Part shown: positions 1 through 5,997 of the stretch, in pieces | How positions within the stretch are numbered: the stretch's first letter is position 1 | Layout of the letters: every line of letters starts with the position of its first letter | Assembly (NCBI RefSeq): GCF_006345805.1 | Contig: NW_021829685.1 | Coordinates: 1-5,997 of the forward strand | Source: Octopus sinensis | Lineage: Eukaryota | Length of the DNA: 5,997 bases | Direction: 5' to 3' | Position numbers and translations under genes: made by a program | Notes under the pieces: generated by a model | Databases searched by the model: none | Told to the model about the DNA's origin: nothing | What the model saw: the letters and a program-made list of their open reading frames with translations, nothing else

Positions 1-39
<39 letters not shown>

Positions 40-42
40 ATA
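1..42. repeat. (TG)n/(TA)n microsatellite
   Basis: tgtgtgtg followed by an uninterrupted (ta)n run to about position 37; read directly. Confidence 0.95.
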
Positions 43-196
43 TGAGTACCTACGGTTACATAGAGATTCGTAACGACACCAACCACCACCCGTTTCCTAC
101 CCCCAACCACGCAGCACAGATGGTACCACTCTTGTGCTCCGCCTCAACAGTCCCCCGCACAGACGGCATCATCACTTAACCCACATCCTTCACTTA

Positions 197-250
197 ACAC
201 ACACGCGCACGCGCGACACATACACGCGGGCGGGCGCGCGCACACGCGCA
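197..250. repeat. (CA)n/(CG)n mixed dinucleotide tract
   Basis: acacacacgcgcacgcgcgacacatacacgcgggcgggcgcgcgcacacgcgca; mostly alternating purine-pyrimidine. Confidence 0.85.
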
Positions 251-307
251 GTCACAGGCAAGCGTAAGATGACCTTGAGTAACATTCTTGAATGGGGACA
301 AGACAAC

Positions 308-352
308 CTAACCTCTCTCTCTCTTTGTCTCTTTTCGTCTCTCCTTCAACAG
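308..352 (+). promoter_or_regulatory. candidate spliceosomal 3' splice site (branch point, polypyrimidine tract, CAG)
   Basis: CTAAC at 308-312, a ~35-nt pyrimidine tract at 312-347, then CAACAG ending at 352. It could equally be a (CT)n microsatellite matching by chance. Confidence 0.3.
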
Positions 353-398
353 CATCAGGAGACGATCATTACGCAGGCTGACACCCCATCTTGTGTAC

Positions 399-980
399 GG
401 CGAGCTGGCAGAATCGTTAGAGCGCCGGGCGAAATGCTTAGCGGTATTTCGTCTGCCGTTACGTTCTGAGTTCAAATTCCGCCGAGGTCGACTTTGCTTT
501 TCATCCTTTAGGGGTCGATTAAATAAGTACCAGTTACGCACTGGGGTCGATATAATCGACTTAATCCCTTTGTCTGTCCTTGTTTGTCCCCTCTGTGTTT
601 AGCCCCTTGTGGGTAATAAAGAAATAGGTATTTCGTCTGTCGTTACGTTCTGAGCTCAAATTCCACCGAGGTCGACTTTGCCTTTCATCCTTTCGGGGTC
701 GATAAATTAAGTACCAGTTACACACTGGGGTCAATGTAATCGACTTAATCTGTTTGTCTGTCCTTGTTTGTCCCCTTTGTGGGTAGTAAAGAAATAGGTA
801 TTTCGTCTGTCGTTACGTTCTGAGCTCAAATTCCGCCGAGGTCGACTTTGCCTTTCATCCTTTCGGGGTCGATTAAATAAGTACCAGTTACGCACTGGGG
901 TCGATATAATCGACTTAATCCCTTTGTCTGTCCTTGTTTGTCCCCTCTATGTTCAGCCCCTTGTGGGCAATCAAGACATA
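399..980 (+). mobile_element. tRNA-derived SINE array A: head + 3 tandem body units (octopus OK/OR-like SINE)
   Basis: Head 399-442 with A box TGGCAGAATCG (406-416) and B box GAGTTCAAATTCC (468-480). Units are 443-626 (184 bp), 627-796 (170 bp, 14-bp deletion near repeated CCCC) and 797-980 (184 bp). No clear TSD. The family name is from recall, not from a search. Confidence 0.9.
406..480 (+). promoter_or_regulatory. RNA polymerase III type-2 internal promoter (A box + B box) of SINE head
   Basis: TGGCAGAATCG fits TRGCNNARY; GAGTTCAAATTCC fits GTTCRANNC. The same pair recurs at 2146-2220 (+) and in the minus-strand heads near 1650-1726 and 3832-3906. Confidence 0.8.
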
Positions 981-1139
981 AATATAAAGAACCAGAGAAG
1001 GAACTACTATGTTGTCATTGGAAATGCTAGAAATAGCAACCTAATCTCTGTTAAATCACCCCGTCAGTCACAACGTTTAAAAATCGGAAGGACACATTAA
1101 ATGATGGCGTCCCACACAAACGCATACACATACATATAT

Positions 1140-1736
1140 CTTTACTACCCACAAGGGGCTAATCACAGAGGGGACAAACAAGGACAGACAAACGGATTGA
1201 GTTGATTATATCGACCCCAGTGCGTAACTGGTACTTAATTTATCGATCCCGAAAGGATGAAAGGCTAAGTCAACCTCGGCAGAATTTGAACTCAGAACGT
1301 AGCGGTAGACGAAATACCTATTTCTTTACTACCCACAAGGGGCTAAACACACAGGGGACAAACAAGGACAGACAAACGGATTGAGTCGATTACATCGATT
1401 CCAGTGCGTAACTGGTACTTATTTAATCGATCCCGAAAGGATGAAAGGCAAAGTCGACCTCGGCAGAATTTGAACTCAGAACGTAGCGGTAGACGAAATA
1501 CCTATTTCTTTACTACCCACTAGGGGCTAAACACACAGGGGACAAACAAGGACAGACAAACGGATTGAGTCGATTACATCGACCCCAATGCGTAACTGGT
1601 ACTTAATTTATCGACCCCGAAAGAATGAAAGGCAAAGTCGACTTCAGCGGAATTTGAACTCAGAACGTAACGGCAGACGAAATACCACTAAGCATTTCGC
1701 CCGGCGTGCTAACGGTTCTGCCAGCTCACCGCCTTC
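1140..1736 (-). mobile_element. tRNA-derived SINE array B: head + 3 tandem 184-bp units
   Basis: Reverse complement of the same family. Head 1687-1736 (starts GAAGGCGGTGAGCTGG on -). Unit boundaries at 1686/1687, 1502/1503 and 1318/1319. Flanked by the 17-bp direct repeat CATACACATACATATAT (1123-1139, 1737-1753). Confidence 0.92.
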
Positions 1737-1795
1737 CATACACATACATATATATAGATACACACATGTACACATACACATACACTACACACATG
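1737..1795. repeat. degenerate (CA)/(TA) microsatellite
   Basis: catacacatacatatatatagatacacacatgtacacatacacatacactacacac. Confidence 0.8.
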
Positions 1796-1950
1796 TAAAT
1801 GCCGTTTTATAACCGGAAGTAATCTTAGGCCTAGCCATCAGCAGCAAAATCCCCGAAGGCCTGAAAAAATCCCAAATCTCACAATTGATATATTCAGGGG
1901 TTGGACAAAATAATGGAAAACTCTTGGATAAATGGAAGTTTTATCATTTC

Positions 1951-2126
1951 ATACGGAGTTGATCCACCTTTGGCATCAATTACAGCTTCGATGCGTCGAA
2001 GAATTCTCTCGTACAAGTTCTGAACGCTTGTTGGAGGAATACTGAGCCATTCTTCAAAAAGAGCCTGCTTTGACGAATGGAAGCACCCCTCACTCGCTGC
2101 TCTAAAATGTTCCATAAATGTTAGAT
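1951..2126 (-). pseudogene. Tc1-like transposase C-terminal remnant
   Basis: I*HLWNILEQRVR, then a frameshift, then EEWLSIPPTSVQNLYERILRRIEAVIDAKGGSTPY. This matches the canonical Tc1 C-terminus (EEW..IP...IQNLYES.PRRI.AVI.AKGG.T.Y). Confidence 0.9.
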
Positions 2127-2133
2127 TTTATTG

Positions 2134-2734
2134 AAGGCAGCGAGCTGGCAGAAACGTTAGCACACCGGGCGAAATGCTTAGCGGTATTTCGTCTGCCGTT
2201 ACGTTCTGAGTTCAAATTTCGCCGTGGTCGACTTTGCCTTTCATCCTTTCGGGGTCGATTAAATAAATACCAGTTACGCACTGAGGTCGATGTAATCGAC
2301 TTAATCCGTTTGTCTGTCCTTGTTTGTCCTCTCTGTGTTTAGCCCCTTGTGGGTAGTAAAGAAATAGGTATTTCGTCTGCCGCTACGTTCTGAATTCAAA
2401 GTCCGCCGAGGTCGACTTTGCCTTTCATCCTTTCGGGGTCGATAAATTAAGTACCAGTTACGCACTGGGGTCGATATAATCGACTTAGTCCGTTTGTCTG
2501 TCCTTGTTTGTCCTCTCTGTGTTTAGCCCCTTGTGGGTAGTAAAGAAATAGGTATTTCGTCTGCCGCTACGTTCTGAGTTCAAATTCTGCCGAGGTCGAC
2601 TTTGCCTTTCATCCTTTCGGGGTCGATAAATTAAGTACCAGTTACGCACTGTGGTCGATGTAATCGACTTAATACCTTTGTCTGTCCTTGTTTGTCCTTT
2701 CTGTGTTTAGCCCCTTGTGGGTAGTAAAGAAATA
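2134..2734 (+). mobile_element. tRNA-derived SINE array C: head + 3 tandem 184-bp units, inserted in Tc1 transposase
   Basis: Head 2134-2182; units 2183-2366, 2367-2550 and 2551-2734. Flanked by TTTATTG (2127-2133, 2735-2741). Removing the insert restores WPPLSLYPNK|I*HLW. Confidence 0.93.
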
Positions 2735-2845
2735 TTTATTGGGATACAGTGATAGCGGAGGCCATACCAAGTAATTTTCAGCATCGTACTCTTCATACCA
2801 ATTTTGTATAACATTAGCCATGTAAGTCAGCGCATTACCATCTTG
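2735..2845 (-). pseudogene. Tc1-like transposase middle remnant (second D to WPPxSPDLN region)
   Basis: QDGNALTYMANVIQNWYEEYDAENYLVWPPLSLYPNK resembles QDDNAPIH..W.EE....WPPQSPDLN. Confidence 0.88.
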
Positions 2846-3270
2846 GGGATCTTTTCGGTTTGAACGGCAGTTTTTTCTAGCGGTGTCATATGAAATTGTC
2901 ACCCATAATTATGACCCTAGTATCGACCTATTGCATTTCAATCTCTTTTAGGGTTAGGGTTAGTGTTAGAGGTGGGGGAAGGGTATCTTTTTTTCTTCAC
3001 AAATGTAAATAAACCCAATCTGTTTCTTAAACGAGGGACATATTCATACGGCACAGAATGTTTTTTTTACCTCAATAAACGTCATTGATTTGTTGAAATT
3101 GCAGAAATTGAATAAAAAAACAACAAATATCTTACAAACTATAGAATTTTCTCAATAAAGCCACAAGAAAAAGATGTTTTATAAACACATTCTACCAGTA
3201 TACGAAGTTTAACATTTTTTAGTTACCTAGAAATTATGTTAAAAACTGCCGTTCAAACCGAAAAGATCCC
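2846..3270. mobile_element. non-autonomous TIR DNA transposon (MITE, ~425 bp)
   Basis: Perfect 30-bp TIR GGGATCTTTTCGGTTTGAACGGCAGTTTTT (2846-2875) and its reverse complement (3241-3270). TSD is ATCTTG (6 bp), or CATCTTGG (8 bp) if the ends are set at 2847/3269. Removing it restores the Tc1 IFQDGNA motif. Confidence 0.92.
2948..2971 (+). repeat. short telomere-like (TTAGGG)n tract inside MITE
   Basis: TTAGGG TTAGGG TTAGTG TTAGAG. Confidence 0.7.
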
Positions 3271-3276
3271 ATCTTG

Positions 3277-3560
3277 GAAGATTGTGCTATTATCAGGGAA
3301 CCATGTTTGTACCATAAGAGGACATGATCAGCCAAAATACTTAGATAACCTTTGGTTTTAATTCTTCCACGTAGAAGAACTAAAGGCTCATGAGAATTTT
3401 GTGATGTGGCAGCCCAACTCATCTCTATGCGTCACGGCAGAGCTGAAGGCTTCTTTGGGCTTTCGCAAGACATAAAGTCGTCTCAAAGTGGAGAAAGGGT
3501 GAATGGTGATTCATCATAGAAAGTAACATTGTTCCTTTCAATCACTGGCCTGGCCACTTC
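3277..3560 (-). pseudogene. Tc1-like transposase N-terminal part of catalytic domain (first D)
   Basis: TFYDESPFTL (D codon 3513-3515), YVLRKPKEAF and MSWAATSQNSHEPLVLLRGRIKTKGYLSILADHV resemble Tc1 FSDES..F, VWR.P.EA and MVWAAIS....GPLV.L.GRI....Y.SIL.D.V. Frameshifted. Confidence 0.85.
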
Positions 3561-3618
3561 TAATAGTCTAGACGCTATTTTCCGCTTATCAATGTTGACG
3601 GGGAACAGGACAGGTTTT

Positions 3619-3640
3619 GTAGTAGTAGTAGTAATAGTAG
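3619..3640 (-). repeat. (CTA)n tail of the RTE element
   Basis: gtagtagtagtagtaatagtag on +, directly after GGATGCC on -. RTE-clade elements typically end in short tandem repeats. Confidence 0.85.
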
Positions 3641-3685
3641 GCATCCGTCAGTCTCGAGAGGCCATGGATCTGCGCCCCCCAAACC

Positions 3686-3909
3686 TATTTCTTTATTACC
3701 CACAAGGGGCTAAACATAGAGGGGACAAACAAAGACAGACAAACGTATTAAGTCGATTACATCGACCCCAGTGCGTAACTGGTACTTAATTTATCGACCC
3801 CGAAAGGATGAAAGGTAAAGTCAACCTCGGCGGAATTTGAACTCAGAACGTAGCAGCAGACGAAATACCGCTAAGCATTTCGCCCGGCGTGCTAACGATT
3901 CTGCCAGCA
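3686..3909 (-). mobile_element. SINE monomer D (head + one 184-bp unit) inserted in RTE 3' UTR
   Basis: Unit 3686-3869, head 3870-3909. Flanked by the TSD CGCCCCCCAAA(A)CC (3673-3685, 3910-3923). Removing it restores a continuous RTE 3' UTR. Confidence 0.93.
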
Positions 3910-3929
3910 CGCCCCCCAAAACCGTGTCT

Positions 3930-4513
3930 GCTTCTGATGGTGGTGCAGCGTCTGTACAGGCCCACACGAGAGTGGCAGTCACGCATGCAACGATTGTATT
4001 TGAAGGCGCCCTCTGTCGGCACAATTGATTTTCCCTTCCGCCGAGAGCGCTTTTCTTTGATGGCGAGTTCCTGTTTTTCTCCCGCTCTCTCCATTCCCTT
4101 TCGCAGTATTTGCCTCCAGTGTGGGGGCGATCGCTTGCAACCTCCTCCCCATCTCAGGACGTCCAGATCAAGCGACTTCATATCCCCCTCCTACAGACGT
4201 CTTTGAAAGCGATGAGGTCGTCCTCGTGCTCGTGTGCCGGTGACTAATTCCCCCCATACAAGAGGTCTTTTGGAGATTCTTCCGTCTGGCAAGCGATGAA
4301 CATGATCGAACCAACCAGCTCAAACGACGCAACTGGAGCAAGATGTGTACGCTGGGTATCTCGGATCGGTTGAGAACTTCAGTGTTGGTGATGTGGTCGG
4401 TTCACTTGATGTCCAAAATGCGTCTCAAATTACGAAGGTGAAAGACGTTGAGACGCCGCTCCTGTCTAGAGTAGAGGCTCCACGTCTCACTGCCGTAAAA
4501 TAGCGTACTAAGG
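3930..4513 (-). pseudogene. RTE ORF C-terminal remnant (post-RT region and C-terminal Cys/His motif)
   Basis: LSTLFYGSETW...RRILDIK*TDHITNTEVL...RLPDGRISKDLLYGEL...RGRP...MKSLDLD...CMRDCHSRVGLY; contains stops and frameshifts. Confidence 0.88.
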
Positions 4514-4658
4514 GTCCACAAGAATAAAATAGTAATCAAAGGGGTACATAGATTTATATAAACTCTAAAGATACTAGTGAATTCCTGATGTATACCCAGT
4601 AGTAATTTCAACTGTATGATGACATGAGATAGCCAATAACTGCCGTCAAGCAGCGTAC

Positions 4659-5482
4659 TAAGGACGCACGCCTTATAGAAAGCAATCTTGGTGTTTGCAG
4701 CCAGTTTTTATTTTGTTTTCCCAGACTCTCTTTGTGAGCCTGGCAAATGTCGGGGATGCTTGTCTGATTCGCCTCTTGATCTTAGGGTCCAGGGAGAGGT
4801 CATCAGCGATGGTAGAGTCGAGATAGGTGAATTGATGGACCACTCTTAGCATGTAGTCGCTGATGGTGATGGTCGTGCTCGAGAATTTGACCAAATTACT
4901 TGGGTCTTCTTCAGACTGATAGTCAGGCTCAATTCCTGACAAGTCTTTGAAAGTTTGTCCTCGAGGTGCTGCGTTTAAGGACGCACGCCTTATAGAAAGC
5001 AATCTTGGCGTTTGCAGCCAGTTTTTTGTTTTCCCAGGCTCGCTTTGTAAGTCTGGCAAATGTGGGGAATGCTTGTTCGATTCGCCTCTTGATCTTAGGG
5101 TCCAGAGAGAGGTCATCAGCGATGGTAGAGTCGAGATAGGTGAATCGATGGACCACTCCTAGCATGTAGTCGCTGAATGGTGATGGTGGGGGCGTGCTCG
5201 AGAGTTTGACCAATTACTTGGGTCTTCTTCAGACTGATAGTCAGGCTCAATTCCTGACAGGTCTTTGAAAGTTTGTCCACGAGGTGCTGCGTTTAAGGAC
5301 GCTCGCCTTATAGAAAGAAATCTTGGCGTTTGCAGCCAGTTTTTTGTTTTCCCAGACTCGCTTTGTGAGTCTGGCAAATGTGGGGAATGCTTGTCCTATT
5401 CACCTCTTGATCTTCGAAATAGGTATTTCGTCTGTCTTTACGTTCTGAGGTCTTCGAAAGTTTGTCGACGACGTGCTGCATT
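4659..5482 (-). repeat. tandem triplication of a ~317-bp RTE RT segment
   Basis: TAAGGACGC[A/T]CGCCTTATAGAAAG recurs at 4659, 4976 and 5294 (periods 317 and 318). Copy 3 (5294-5482) lacks ~165 bp internally. Confidence 0.93.
5416..5449 (+). mobile_element. orphan 34-bp SINE tail-to-body junction fragment
   Basis: GAAATAGGTATTTCGTCTGTCTTTACGTTCTGAG matches the array A junction (621-654, 791-824) at 33/34 nt. Flanked by TCTTCGAAA direct repeats (5411-5419, 5451-5459). Confidence 0.88.
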
Positions 5483-5891
5483 TGTTCTTCAGAGGGCGCT
5501 GTCAGTGCTGCTTCGTCTGTGAACAGCATTTCTCTGACGAGTACCTGGCGCACCATGGATTTTGCTTTTAGCCTCAACTGACTAAACAGTTTGCCGCTTG
5601 ATCTGATGTCCCAAATATACGCTTCAGCATGACTTCGTACACACCAAAAAATGTCACGGGCGGCTGCAGAAGCTTCGTAACTTTGATTGACAGCGAAGAG
5701 TCAAGTATCGAAAATACTGTTTTGACACTCAAAGTTGATGTGTGAAAGACGAAATAGGAATTTTGAAAGCAGTTTCTATAAAATTAGATTTAAAACATTG
5801 AATGGCTATAAGGGTGGAGAAAGGGAGAGGGGGTGAAGAAAATGGTTCTAGGGTAGTGGAGAAGGGGTTGGGGTGAAGTTTGATAGGGTGT

Positions 5892-5921
5892 GGTGGCGGT
5901 GGTGGTGGTGGTGGTGGAGGT
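5892..5921. repeat. (GGT)n microsatellite
   Basis: ggtggcggtggtggtggtggtggtggaggt. Confidence 0.9.
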
Positions 5922-5977
5922 ATATTATAGGGCGTGTTAAGCGGATGGAGGGCAGATGTGATATTCAGGCTGATAGT

Positions 5978-5997
5978 GGCGGAGGTGGTGGTGGTGG
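5978..5997. repeat. (GGT)n microsatellite running off the window
   Basis: ggcggaggtggtggtggtgg. Confidence 0.85.

Follow-up and report, generated by a model that had tools for sequence, protein, structure and literature searches.

How can a short repeat unit that begins at the edge of a hairpin loop come to be joined, always at the same base, to its own 3' end? This question is raised by a stretch of Octopus sinensis DNA (contig NW_021829685.1, positions 1 to 5,997), the whole of which, 5997 bases, is called the window below. The window is pieced together from decayed mobile elements, and one short non-coding element occurs in it four times, as three trimers and one monomer. Each copy consists of a head of ~49 nt followed by one or more 184-nt units arranged head to tail. 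All unit statistics below were obtained from ten units, four heads and one fragment lying within ~6 kb. The initial annotation had drawn attention to the interval 428-634, which extends from the head hairpin of the first copy through its first unit-unit junction, and had proposed that the unit passes through a circular or ligated RNA. The explanation favoured here, to which we give about an even chance, is that the element is a SINE-like family (SINE, short interspersed nuclear element) whose arrays were inherited from multi-unit source genes, and that the junction goes back to a single or rare join made at the level of RNA.

The copies, numbered C1 to C4 along the window, and the target-site duplications that enclose them are as follows.

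398-980, plus strand: C1, trimer; head 398-442, unit 1 443-626, unit 2 627-796, unit 3 797-980.
1140-1736, minus strand: C2, trimer; head 1736-1687, units 1686-1503, 1502-1319 and 1318-1140, tail ~5 nt short.
1123-1139 and 1737-1753: 17-bp target-site duplication of C2, CATACACATACATATAT.
2134-2734, plus strand: C3, trimer of 601 bp; head 2134-2182, units 2183-2366, 2367-2550 and 2551-2734.
2127-2133 and 2735-2741: 7-bp target-site duplication of C3, TTTATTG.
3686-3910, minus strand: C4, monomer; head 3910-3870 (5' end a few nt short), unit 3869-3686, last bases GAAATA.
3673-3685 and 3910-3923: 13/14-bp target-site duplication of C4, CGCCCCCCAAACC and CGCCCCCCAAAACC respectively.
5416-5449, plus strand: 34-nt fragment of the element with a unit-unit junction, GAAATA/GGTATTTCGTCTGTCTTTACGTTCTGAG (the slash marks the joint here and below).

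The head consensus (~49 nt) is AAGGCGGCGAGCTGGCAGAAtCGTTAGCACGCCGGGCGAAATGCTTAGC. The 184-nt unit begins with GGTATTTCGTCT..., finishes with ...GTAGTAAAGAAATA and has a GC content of 46%. Unit 2 of C1 measures 170 nt instead of 184 because of a 14-nt deletion. As a separate point of layout, C1 (plus strand) and C2 (minus strand) lie tail to tail with ~160 bp between them and make up a ~600-bp inverted repeat, which could form a fold-back structure in any transcript or while the DNA is replicated.

The four copies range from 225 to 601 bp, have different flanks and share their 5' and 3' ends. The target-site duplications vary in length (17 bp in C2, 13/14 bp in C4 and 7 bp in C3); that of C1, a copy whose 5' end is ~4 nt short, is unrecognisable. 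The element has no terminal inverted repeats and no poly(A), and its tail reads ...GTAAAGAAATA (...CCCCTTGTGGGTAGTAAAGAAATA). Its open reading frames (ORFs) of 54-74 aa are spurious and without homologues, and a protein search with the ORF that spans the junction returned nothing. Variable duplications together with the lack of terminal inverted repeats, poly(A) and ORF are the features of a SINE moved by a long interspersed nuclear element (LINE) that recognises a specific 3' tail. It can be seen at C3 that the array entered in one step. When C3 and one copy of its duplication are excised and the flanks are joined, a continuous frame (...WPPLSLYPNKI*HLWNILEQRVR...) is restored; the C3 trimer with its one head is therefore one insertion. 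Every array carries a single head within a single pair of target-site duplications, and each was therefore made from one head-containing cDNA.

The unit starts at G443, as had been proposed, and this base, the first past the tetraloop, opens the 3' arm of the head hairpin. The junctions between the units lie at the following positions.

621-634, plus strand: first unit-unit junction of C1, GAAATA/GGTATTTC, the 3' terminus abutting the first 3'-arm base.
791-804, 2361-2374 and 2545-2558, plus strand: further junctions of C1 and C3, GAAATA/GGTATTTC.
1311-1324 and 1495-1508, minus strand: junctions of C2, GAAATA/GGTATTTC.

This sequence is unchanged at all internal junctions (6/6) and in the stray fragment (5416-5429). 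The retrotransposed RNA truly ended in GAAATA, because in C3 and C4 the target-site duplication adjoins these bases directly. The bases GGT that follow GAAATA in C4 were considered as part of a longer RNA tail and this was rejected, since they belong to the target-site duplication. As GAAATA is terminal in the element and also in the internal units, the junction consists of the exact 3' end and the post-loop base with nothing between. The possibility that the unit tail is homologous to the 5' part of the head, which would turn the register into an artefact, was likewise rejected, because local alignment of the two was no better than that of shuffled sequences (p = 0.27-0.77).

The other side of the junction coincides with the head hairpin. 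The pairing described in the initial annotation is real: in C1 GGGCGAAATGC (427-437) pairs with GTATTTCGTCT (444-454), with TTAGCG (438-443) between them. The minimum free energy fold adds the pairs C426-G455 and U438.G443, giving 13 bp and a UAGC tetraloop in all four heads (4/4).

426-455, plus strand: head hairpin of C1 in the minimum free energy fold, 13-bp stem CGGGCGAAAUGCU / GGUAUUUCGUCUG, tetraloop UAGC at 439-442.
2166-2195, plus strand: equivalent hairpin of C3.
Minus strand, at unit start 1686: equivalent hairpin of C2.
Minus strand, at unit start 3869: equivalent hairpin of C4.

The isolated 30-nt hairpin has a predicted energy of -15.3 kcal/mol, compared with -4.8 +/- 1.9 kcal/mol for dinucleotide shuffles, and only one of 2000 shuffles was equally stable. 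The antisense RNA reaches just -3.2 kcal/mol. The hairpin is confined to the sense RNA because four of its 13 sense pairs are G.U, and this predicted strand asymmetry suggests a structure that forms in the sense transcript, at the level of RNA. In the full trimer RNA the 5' arm can pair with any unit start, and the calculated equilibrium probability of the local hairpin is ~0.11; co-transcriptional folding would favour the local hairpin in such an RNA. Since the right side of the junction is the first post-loop base of a sense-strand hairpin, a 5' end made in the tetraloop is a reasonable origin, and the junction, judged from its sequence, looks like an RNA-level join. Thus the loop-derived 5' end and the RNA-level join are kept from the earlier interpretation as what we infer, while the circle and its rolling-circle copying are not supported by the unit comparison below.

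How the loop would be cut was also part of that interpretation, which had called the hairpin anticodon-like and had named TSEN or anticodon nucleases as the enzymes. The structure does not agree with this. Its loop is of 4-6 nt and not 7, its stem of 11-13 bp and not 5, and there is no bulge-helix-bulge, so that the hairpin is without the features which such enzymes recognise. ARAGORN detected no tRNA in the window, and Rfam searches with the whole window and with the head alone gave no match to tRNA, 5S, 7SL or snRNA at E<=10. A head that is a model-detectable derivative of tRNA, 5S, 7SL or snRNA was rejected on the outcome of these searches. The absence of a hammerhead core, which the initial annotation had itself remarked on, was confirmed: across the multimers, junctions included, no ribozyme was matched by Rfam at E<=10, and this applies to the HDV-like, twister and other ribozyme families as well. 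Sub-threshold Rfam matches to miRNAs (mir-297 and similar) were seen at microsatellite-like runs at 1-43, 1737-1790 and 5890-5997, which are composed of (TG)n(TA)n, CA/TA-rich and (GGT)n sequence; the matches of the mir-297 type are taken as low-complexity artefacts.

A further property of the junction had been pointed out correctly. The last six bases of the unit, GAAATA, are the exact reverse complement of TATTTC at unit bases 3-8. Among the 179 six-mers of the unit, GAAATA alone has its reverse complement within the first 14 nt of the unit, and the chance of such a complement for a random terminal six-mer is ~0.001 in what is a post hoc test. In the headless 184-nt RNA the two ends are predicted to pair with each other with a probability of ~0.5. 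The claim that the junction is itself a hairpin finds no such agreement, as the stem would have only five A/U-rich pairs (-1.4 kcal/mol), the bare 14-mer is unfolded, and junction windows fold no better than their shuffles (z = +0.47 and +1.38). Covariation, which had been suggested as a check, cannot be read here because the stem, the tail and the unit start are all invariant; the sole variation is at loop base 442, changed from C to T in C2.

To see how the arrays are related, the ten units were compared at 48 variable sites, 17 of them informative, the units being perhaps non-independent samples of the family. The mean distance is 6.5% within arrays and 7.9% between arrays (permutation p = 0.0035). 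Private variants are found in all three units of one array, namely 120C in C2 and 148T in C3. At three non-CpG sites (78T/81A, which are perfectly linked, and 110) the same two states recur inside all three arrays, in the orders ABA, BAB and ABB. We simulated a model in which units are identical at birth and then decay independently, with CpG hypermutability of 1-10 fold, and the two-state pattern appeared in none of the 3000 runs. The units of an array were therefore non-identical at birth, and an origin from identical units, whether copied from a monomer circle or duplicated in situ, is rejected. The units are also mosaics: the four-gamete test fails for 43 of 91 pairs of non-CpG sites, which corresponds to at least 4 exchanges within 184 nt.

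In the 5' 77 nt, units 2 and 3 differ from each other at 1-3 sites and from unit 1 at 4-9 sites, in all three arrays. In the 3' 107 nt, units 2 and 3 differ at 6-11 sites, as random pairs do (between-array mean 8.6). A B-box-like stretch (sites 26-39) is changed in six of six internal units compared with one of four head-attached units (Fisher one-sided p = 0.033, calculated by hand), and these changes are common to units 2 and 3. Such a pattern is expected if only the head-attached unit was constrained in the source genes.

Taken together, these results may be explained in the following way. [quoted passage not shown] A LINE enzyme would start at the terminal ...GTAAAGAAATA, and the whole array would be reverse-transcribed and inserted as one piece. 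At some time a SINE RNA would have been broken in the exposed tetraloop of its head hairpin, leaving a 5' end at G443. A reverse transcriptase that reached this end might then have jumped, end to end, onto another SINE RNA, a full-length one, at its 3' terminus. Made once or rarely, this jump would have created a multi-unit copy that became a source gene. Later inheritance would have proceeded array by array, while unit number and content were reshuffled by in-register exchange, either by template switching as the RNA was reverse-transcribed or by unequal recombination together with gene conversion. Inheritance of the junction is the simplest assumption because seven of seven junctions are identical. 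The boundary of a duplication made in DNA would meet the element terminus with a chance of ~1/184. The consensus sense strand has no run of four T, a weakly unusual property found in 6.7% of shuffles; this is compatible with Pol III read-through. Non-LTR (LTR, long terminal repeat) reverse transcriptases are able to jump between templates, and do so seamlessly if a 1-2 nt overhang matches the 3' end of the acceptor (PMC8857657), and in retroposed fragments of tRNA and 5S the truncation points fall in loops (PMC5322556). A jump driven by microhomology of the cDNA end with the acceptor tail was considered and rejected, since both are of the same sense and not complementary. Template jumps are also documented in chimeric retrocopies. 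It may be speculated that pairing of the tail with the unit start could tether the acceptor RNA near the donor 5' end. From the sequence, ligated concatemers of different headless RNAs and template jumping are indistinguishable.

Several observations weigh against this explanation. The sample is of just ten units, four heads and one fragment, all in one 6-kb window, and no further copy was retrieved elsewhere. An exact junction scan of viral contigs gave nothing, two conserved 17-18-mers hit 10 loci in viral contigs of which none aligns beyond the seed, two scans of metagenomes and one of bacterial/archaeal genomes produced either no hit or 21-mers due to chance, the contigs of two relatives of the neighbouring LINE reverse transcriptase contain no copy of the element, and its sequence strings have no match in the papers searched. 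The Pol III promoter that the head would carry is not demonstrated: the A-box-like TGGCAGAATCG has 2 mismatches and the window contains 23 such matches when 22 are expected by chance, and the strict B-box consensus was missed in a scan allowing up to 2 mismatches, with GAGTTCAAATTCC resembling a B box by eye. There is no positional orthology between arrays, since units at the same position differ by 7.9% and units at different positions by 7.8% (p = 0.90). This rules out an ancestral trimer with position-specific units common to the three trimers, and a common trimeric ancestor therefore needs fast unit turnover. Three trimers among four copies could reflect either a fixed trimer or chance. 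No simple history explains why units 2 and 3 are alike in the 5' 77 nt and unlike in the 3' 107 nt. Finally, a plain end-to-end jump makes no use of the complementary tail and unit start, a complementarity that better fits models in which both ends are held together.

Such models differ in what happens after the loop is cut. In one of them concatenation recurs at every retrotransposition: SINE RNA would regularly be cut in the tetraloop, and the LINE reverse transcriptase would copy one or two of the headless 184-nt RNAs, jump from end to end every time and finish on a full-length RNA, the acceptor tail having paired beforehand with UAUUUC at the donor 5' end. This would account for a junction made of the exact 3' terminus and a loop-edge 5' end, for the complementary tail and the predicted end pairing (~0.5) of the headless RNA, for different old variants among the units of one array (ABA, BAB, ABB) and for the head-attached unit being unlike the internal units in its 5' part in three of three arrays, and it relies on the template jumping documented for non-LTR reverse transcriptases (PMC8857657). 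However, random draws of RNAs would not yield the within-array likeness (p = 0.0035) or the array-wide private variants, seven identical junctions without added bases demand a very precise process, and a constant jump probability would hardly give three arrays that all have exactly three units. We regard recurrent concatenation as possible but unlikely. The circular model of the initial annotation, a ribozyme-free analogue of a retrozyme, has a host nuclease cut the loop and RtcB join the ends held by GAAAUA/UAUUUC pairing, so that 184-nt circles or concatemers are reverse-transcribed. It too benefits from precise junctions and from ends that are complementary beyond chance and predicted to pair (~0.5). 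In addition, metazoan non-LTR retrozymes with units of 170-400 nt can cycle via RtcB-ligated circles (PMC7229834), and the unit size and 46% GC lie within the retrozyme range. Rolling-circle copying of a monomer circle, which predicts exact units, fails nevertheless, as the units were non-identical at birth (0/3000 simulations) and units 2 and 3 have 6-11 differences in their 3' 107 nt. Moreover, every array is headed, ends exactly at the tail and is enclosed by a single target-site duplication pair; neither a hammerhead nor any other ribozyme is matched at E<=10; the hairpin is without recognition features for TSEN or anticodon nucleases; and the junction helix is marginal (-1.4 kcal/mol). 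It therefore seems very improbable that the arrays arose in this way. Scarcely better placed, and also improbable, is a variant, dependent on host enzymes, in which headless RNAs with paired ends, routinely cut in the tetraloop by a host nuclease, are joined by RtcB into circles or concatemers, or are copied as pseudo-circles by a jumping reverse transcriptase, and so feed the gain of units by the SINE.

Another possibility places the event in DNA. Unequal crossing-over, replication slippage or gene conversion, in the source genes or after insertion, may have multiplied the unit, its boundary then coinciding with the hairpin loop and the element terminus by accident. Within-array similarity, array-wide private variants and mosaic units are what the concerted evolution of tandem repeats produces, and unequal homologous recombination has been proposed for SINE-derived arrays of squamates and bivalves (PMC10702118, PMC11481361). 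On the other hand, the boundary would have to hit both the exact 3' terminus (~1/184) and the exact border of loop and arm. The junction has no microhomology, and recombination between the GAAAT of the head and that of the tail would retain the loop sequence GCTTAGC, which is absent; with no significant homology of head and unit tail (p = 0.27-0.77), a register artefact does not help. A DNA-level origin is thus distinctly unlikely. Serial insertion into the tail would require that copies truncated at G443 enter the resident GAAATA tail, the nicked tail DNA priming on the identical tail of the incoming RNA. The original target-site duplications would then stay around the growing array, units of one array could carry different old variants, and SINE multimers built from separate elements are known (PMC10702118). 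Yet each incoming copy must be truncated at the identical base, none of six junctions shows extra duplications or filler, and independent insertions would not have array-specific variants in common. We consider this the least probable origin and give it hardly any weight. Inheritance of arrays after a single or rare RNA-level join is thus the explanation that we retain.

Similar structures have been described in other animals. In the blood clam Scapharca broughtonii, HCD tRNA-derived SINEs form arrays of the type 'TSD1-(SINE)n-TSD1' (PMC11481361). As in the octopus element, only the first unit has a complete head, the heads of the following units are uniformly truncated and one pair of duplications encloses the array; two to three units are common in the clam, and the arrays here have up to three. 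In contrast, the internal units of the clam are cut short in their 3' tail, whereas all units here reach GAAATA, the complete terminus. The likeness is one of architecture, and for the head studied here a tRNA origin is not demonstrable. The satellites derived from SINEs in squamates (PMC10702118), and internally duplicated or dimeric SINEs, also have tandem SINE portions, a terminal unit that is longer and extends to the SINE terminus, and units partly homogenised within loci. Those satellites grow to hundreds of units, lie near telomeres and are attributed to unequal recombination, whereas the present arrays are dispersed, stay short (up to three units) and retrotranspose in their entirety.

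Metazoan non-LTR retrozymes (PMC7229834; bioRxiv 10.64898/2026.07.22.740005) come closest to what the initial annotation had in mind. They occur in invertebrate genomes as tandem units of 150-450 nt that are non-coding, and a spread via RNA intermediates and a borrowed reverse transcriptase has been proposed for them. They possess a type I hammerhead in each unit and circular RNAs (PMC7229834), whereas the octopus element has no ribozyme, a unique head per array and units that were non-identical at birth. Because the defining hammerhead is absent, the element is not a retrozyme. Template jumping of the Bombyx R2 enzyme (PMC8857657) provides a mechanism by which the 5' end of one RNA is joined to the 3' end of another in one cDNA; it was documented in vitro and not as the origin of a SINE repeat unit. 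The tailless retropseudogenes of tRNA and 5S rRNA (PMC5322556) resemble the unit in having an end at a loop, with the difference that it is the 3' end there and the 5' end here. SINE-derived tandem arrays are thus already described, and the instructive detail of the present ones is the exact terminus-to-loop junction. If the junction records a jump from a loop-derived 5' end, it is a clean natural footprint of template jumping, an activity documented mainly in vitro, and it would show a route from a SINE to a short tandem array and possibly to the seed of a satellite. The complementarity of tail and unit start, which is left unexplained by the jump, leaves a small chance of a ribozyme-free end-joining step that would link SINEs to retrozyme-like biology.

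Other elements of the window border on the copies or are interrupted by them.

3619-5730, minus strand: LINE remnant; its 3' end is a (TAC)n run at ~3619-3640, and C4 sits in its 3' region.
4659-5414: 318-bp tandem duplication (2.4 copies, 92% matches) in the C-terminal part of the LINE reverse-transcriptase ORF (minus strand).
4489-4513 and 4639-4663: 25-nt direct repeats flanking an extra ~125 bp in the same LINE ORF.
5416-5449: the 34-nt element fragment listed above, CGAAATAGGTATTTCGTCTGTCTTTACGTTCTGAG, substituting for ~190 nt of the decayed LINE (minus strand).
1880-2133 and 2742-3640, minus strand: decayed ORF split by the C3 trimer.
2838-3277: insertion resembling a miniature inverted-repeat transposable element (MITE), with perfect 30-bp terminal inverted repeats at 2846-2875 and 3241-3270 and a flanking direct repeat CCATCTTGG.

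The best database protein for the C-terminal region of the LINE reverse transcriptase is 67% identical and comes from the manta ray Mobula birostris. This LINE, the sole one in the window, is not the partner of the element, because its tail shares nothing with the element tail. The breakpoint at the 34-nt patch lies in the third 318-bp copy (within 4659-5500), and TCTTCGAAA is found on either side of the patch, which looks like templated filler or a template switch. Since the patch spans a unit-unit junction, its template must have been a multi-unit molecule; in the sense of the LINE cDNA an antisense SINE template would be needed.

The decayed ORF that C3 splits gave no Pfam match and no homologue in a large protein search. 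It contains motifs (...WPPLSLYPNKI.HLWNILEQRVR..., ...AVIDAKGGSTPY) which we take, as an unconfirmed label, to be Tc1/mariner transposase-like. The MITE-like insertion lies inside this same ORF; it is AT-rich and has a short TTAGGG-like run near 2945-2960, and its perfect terminal inverted repeats suggest that it is recent.

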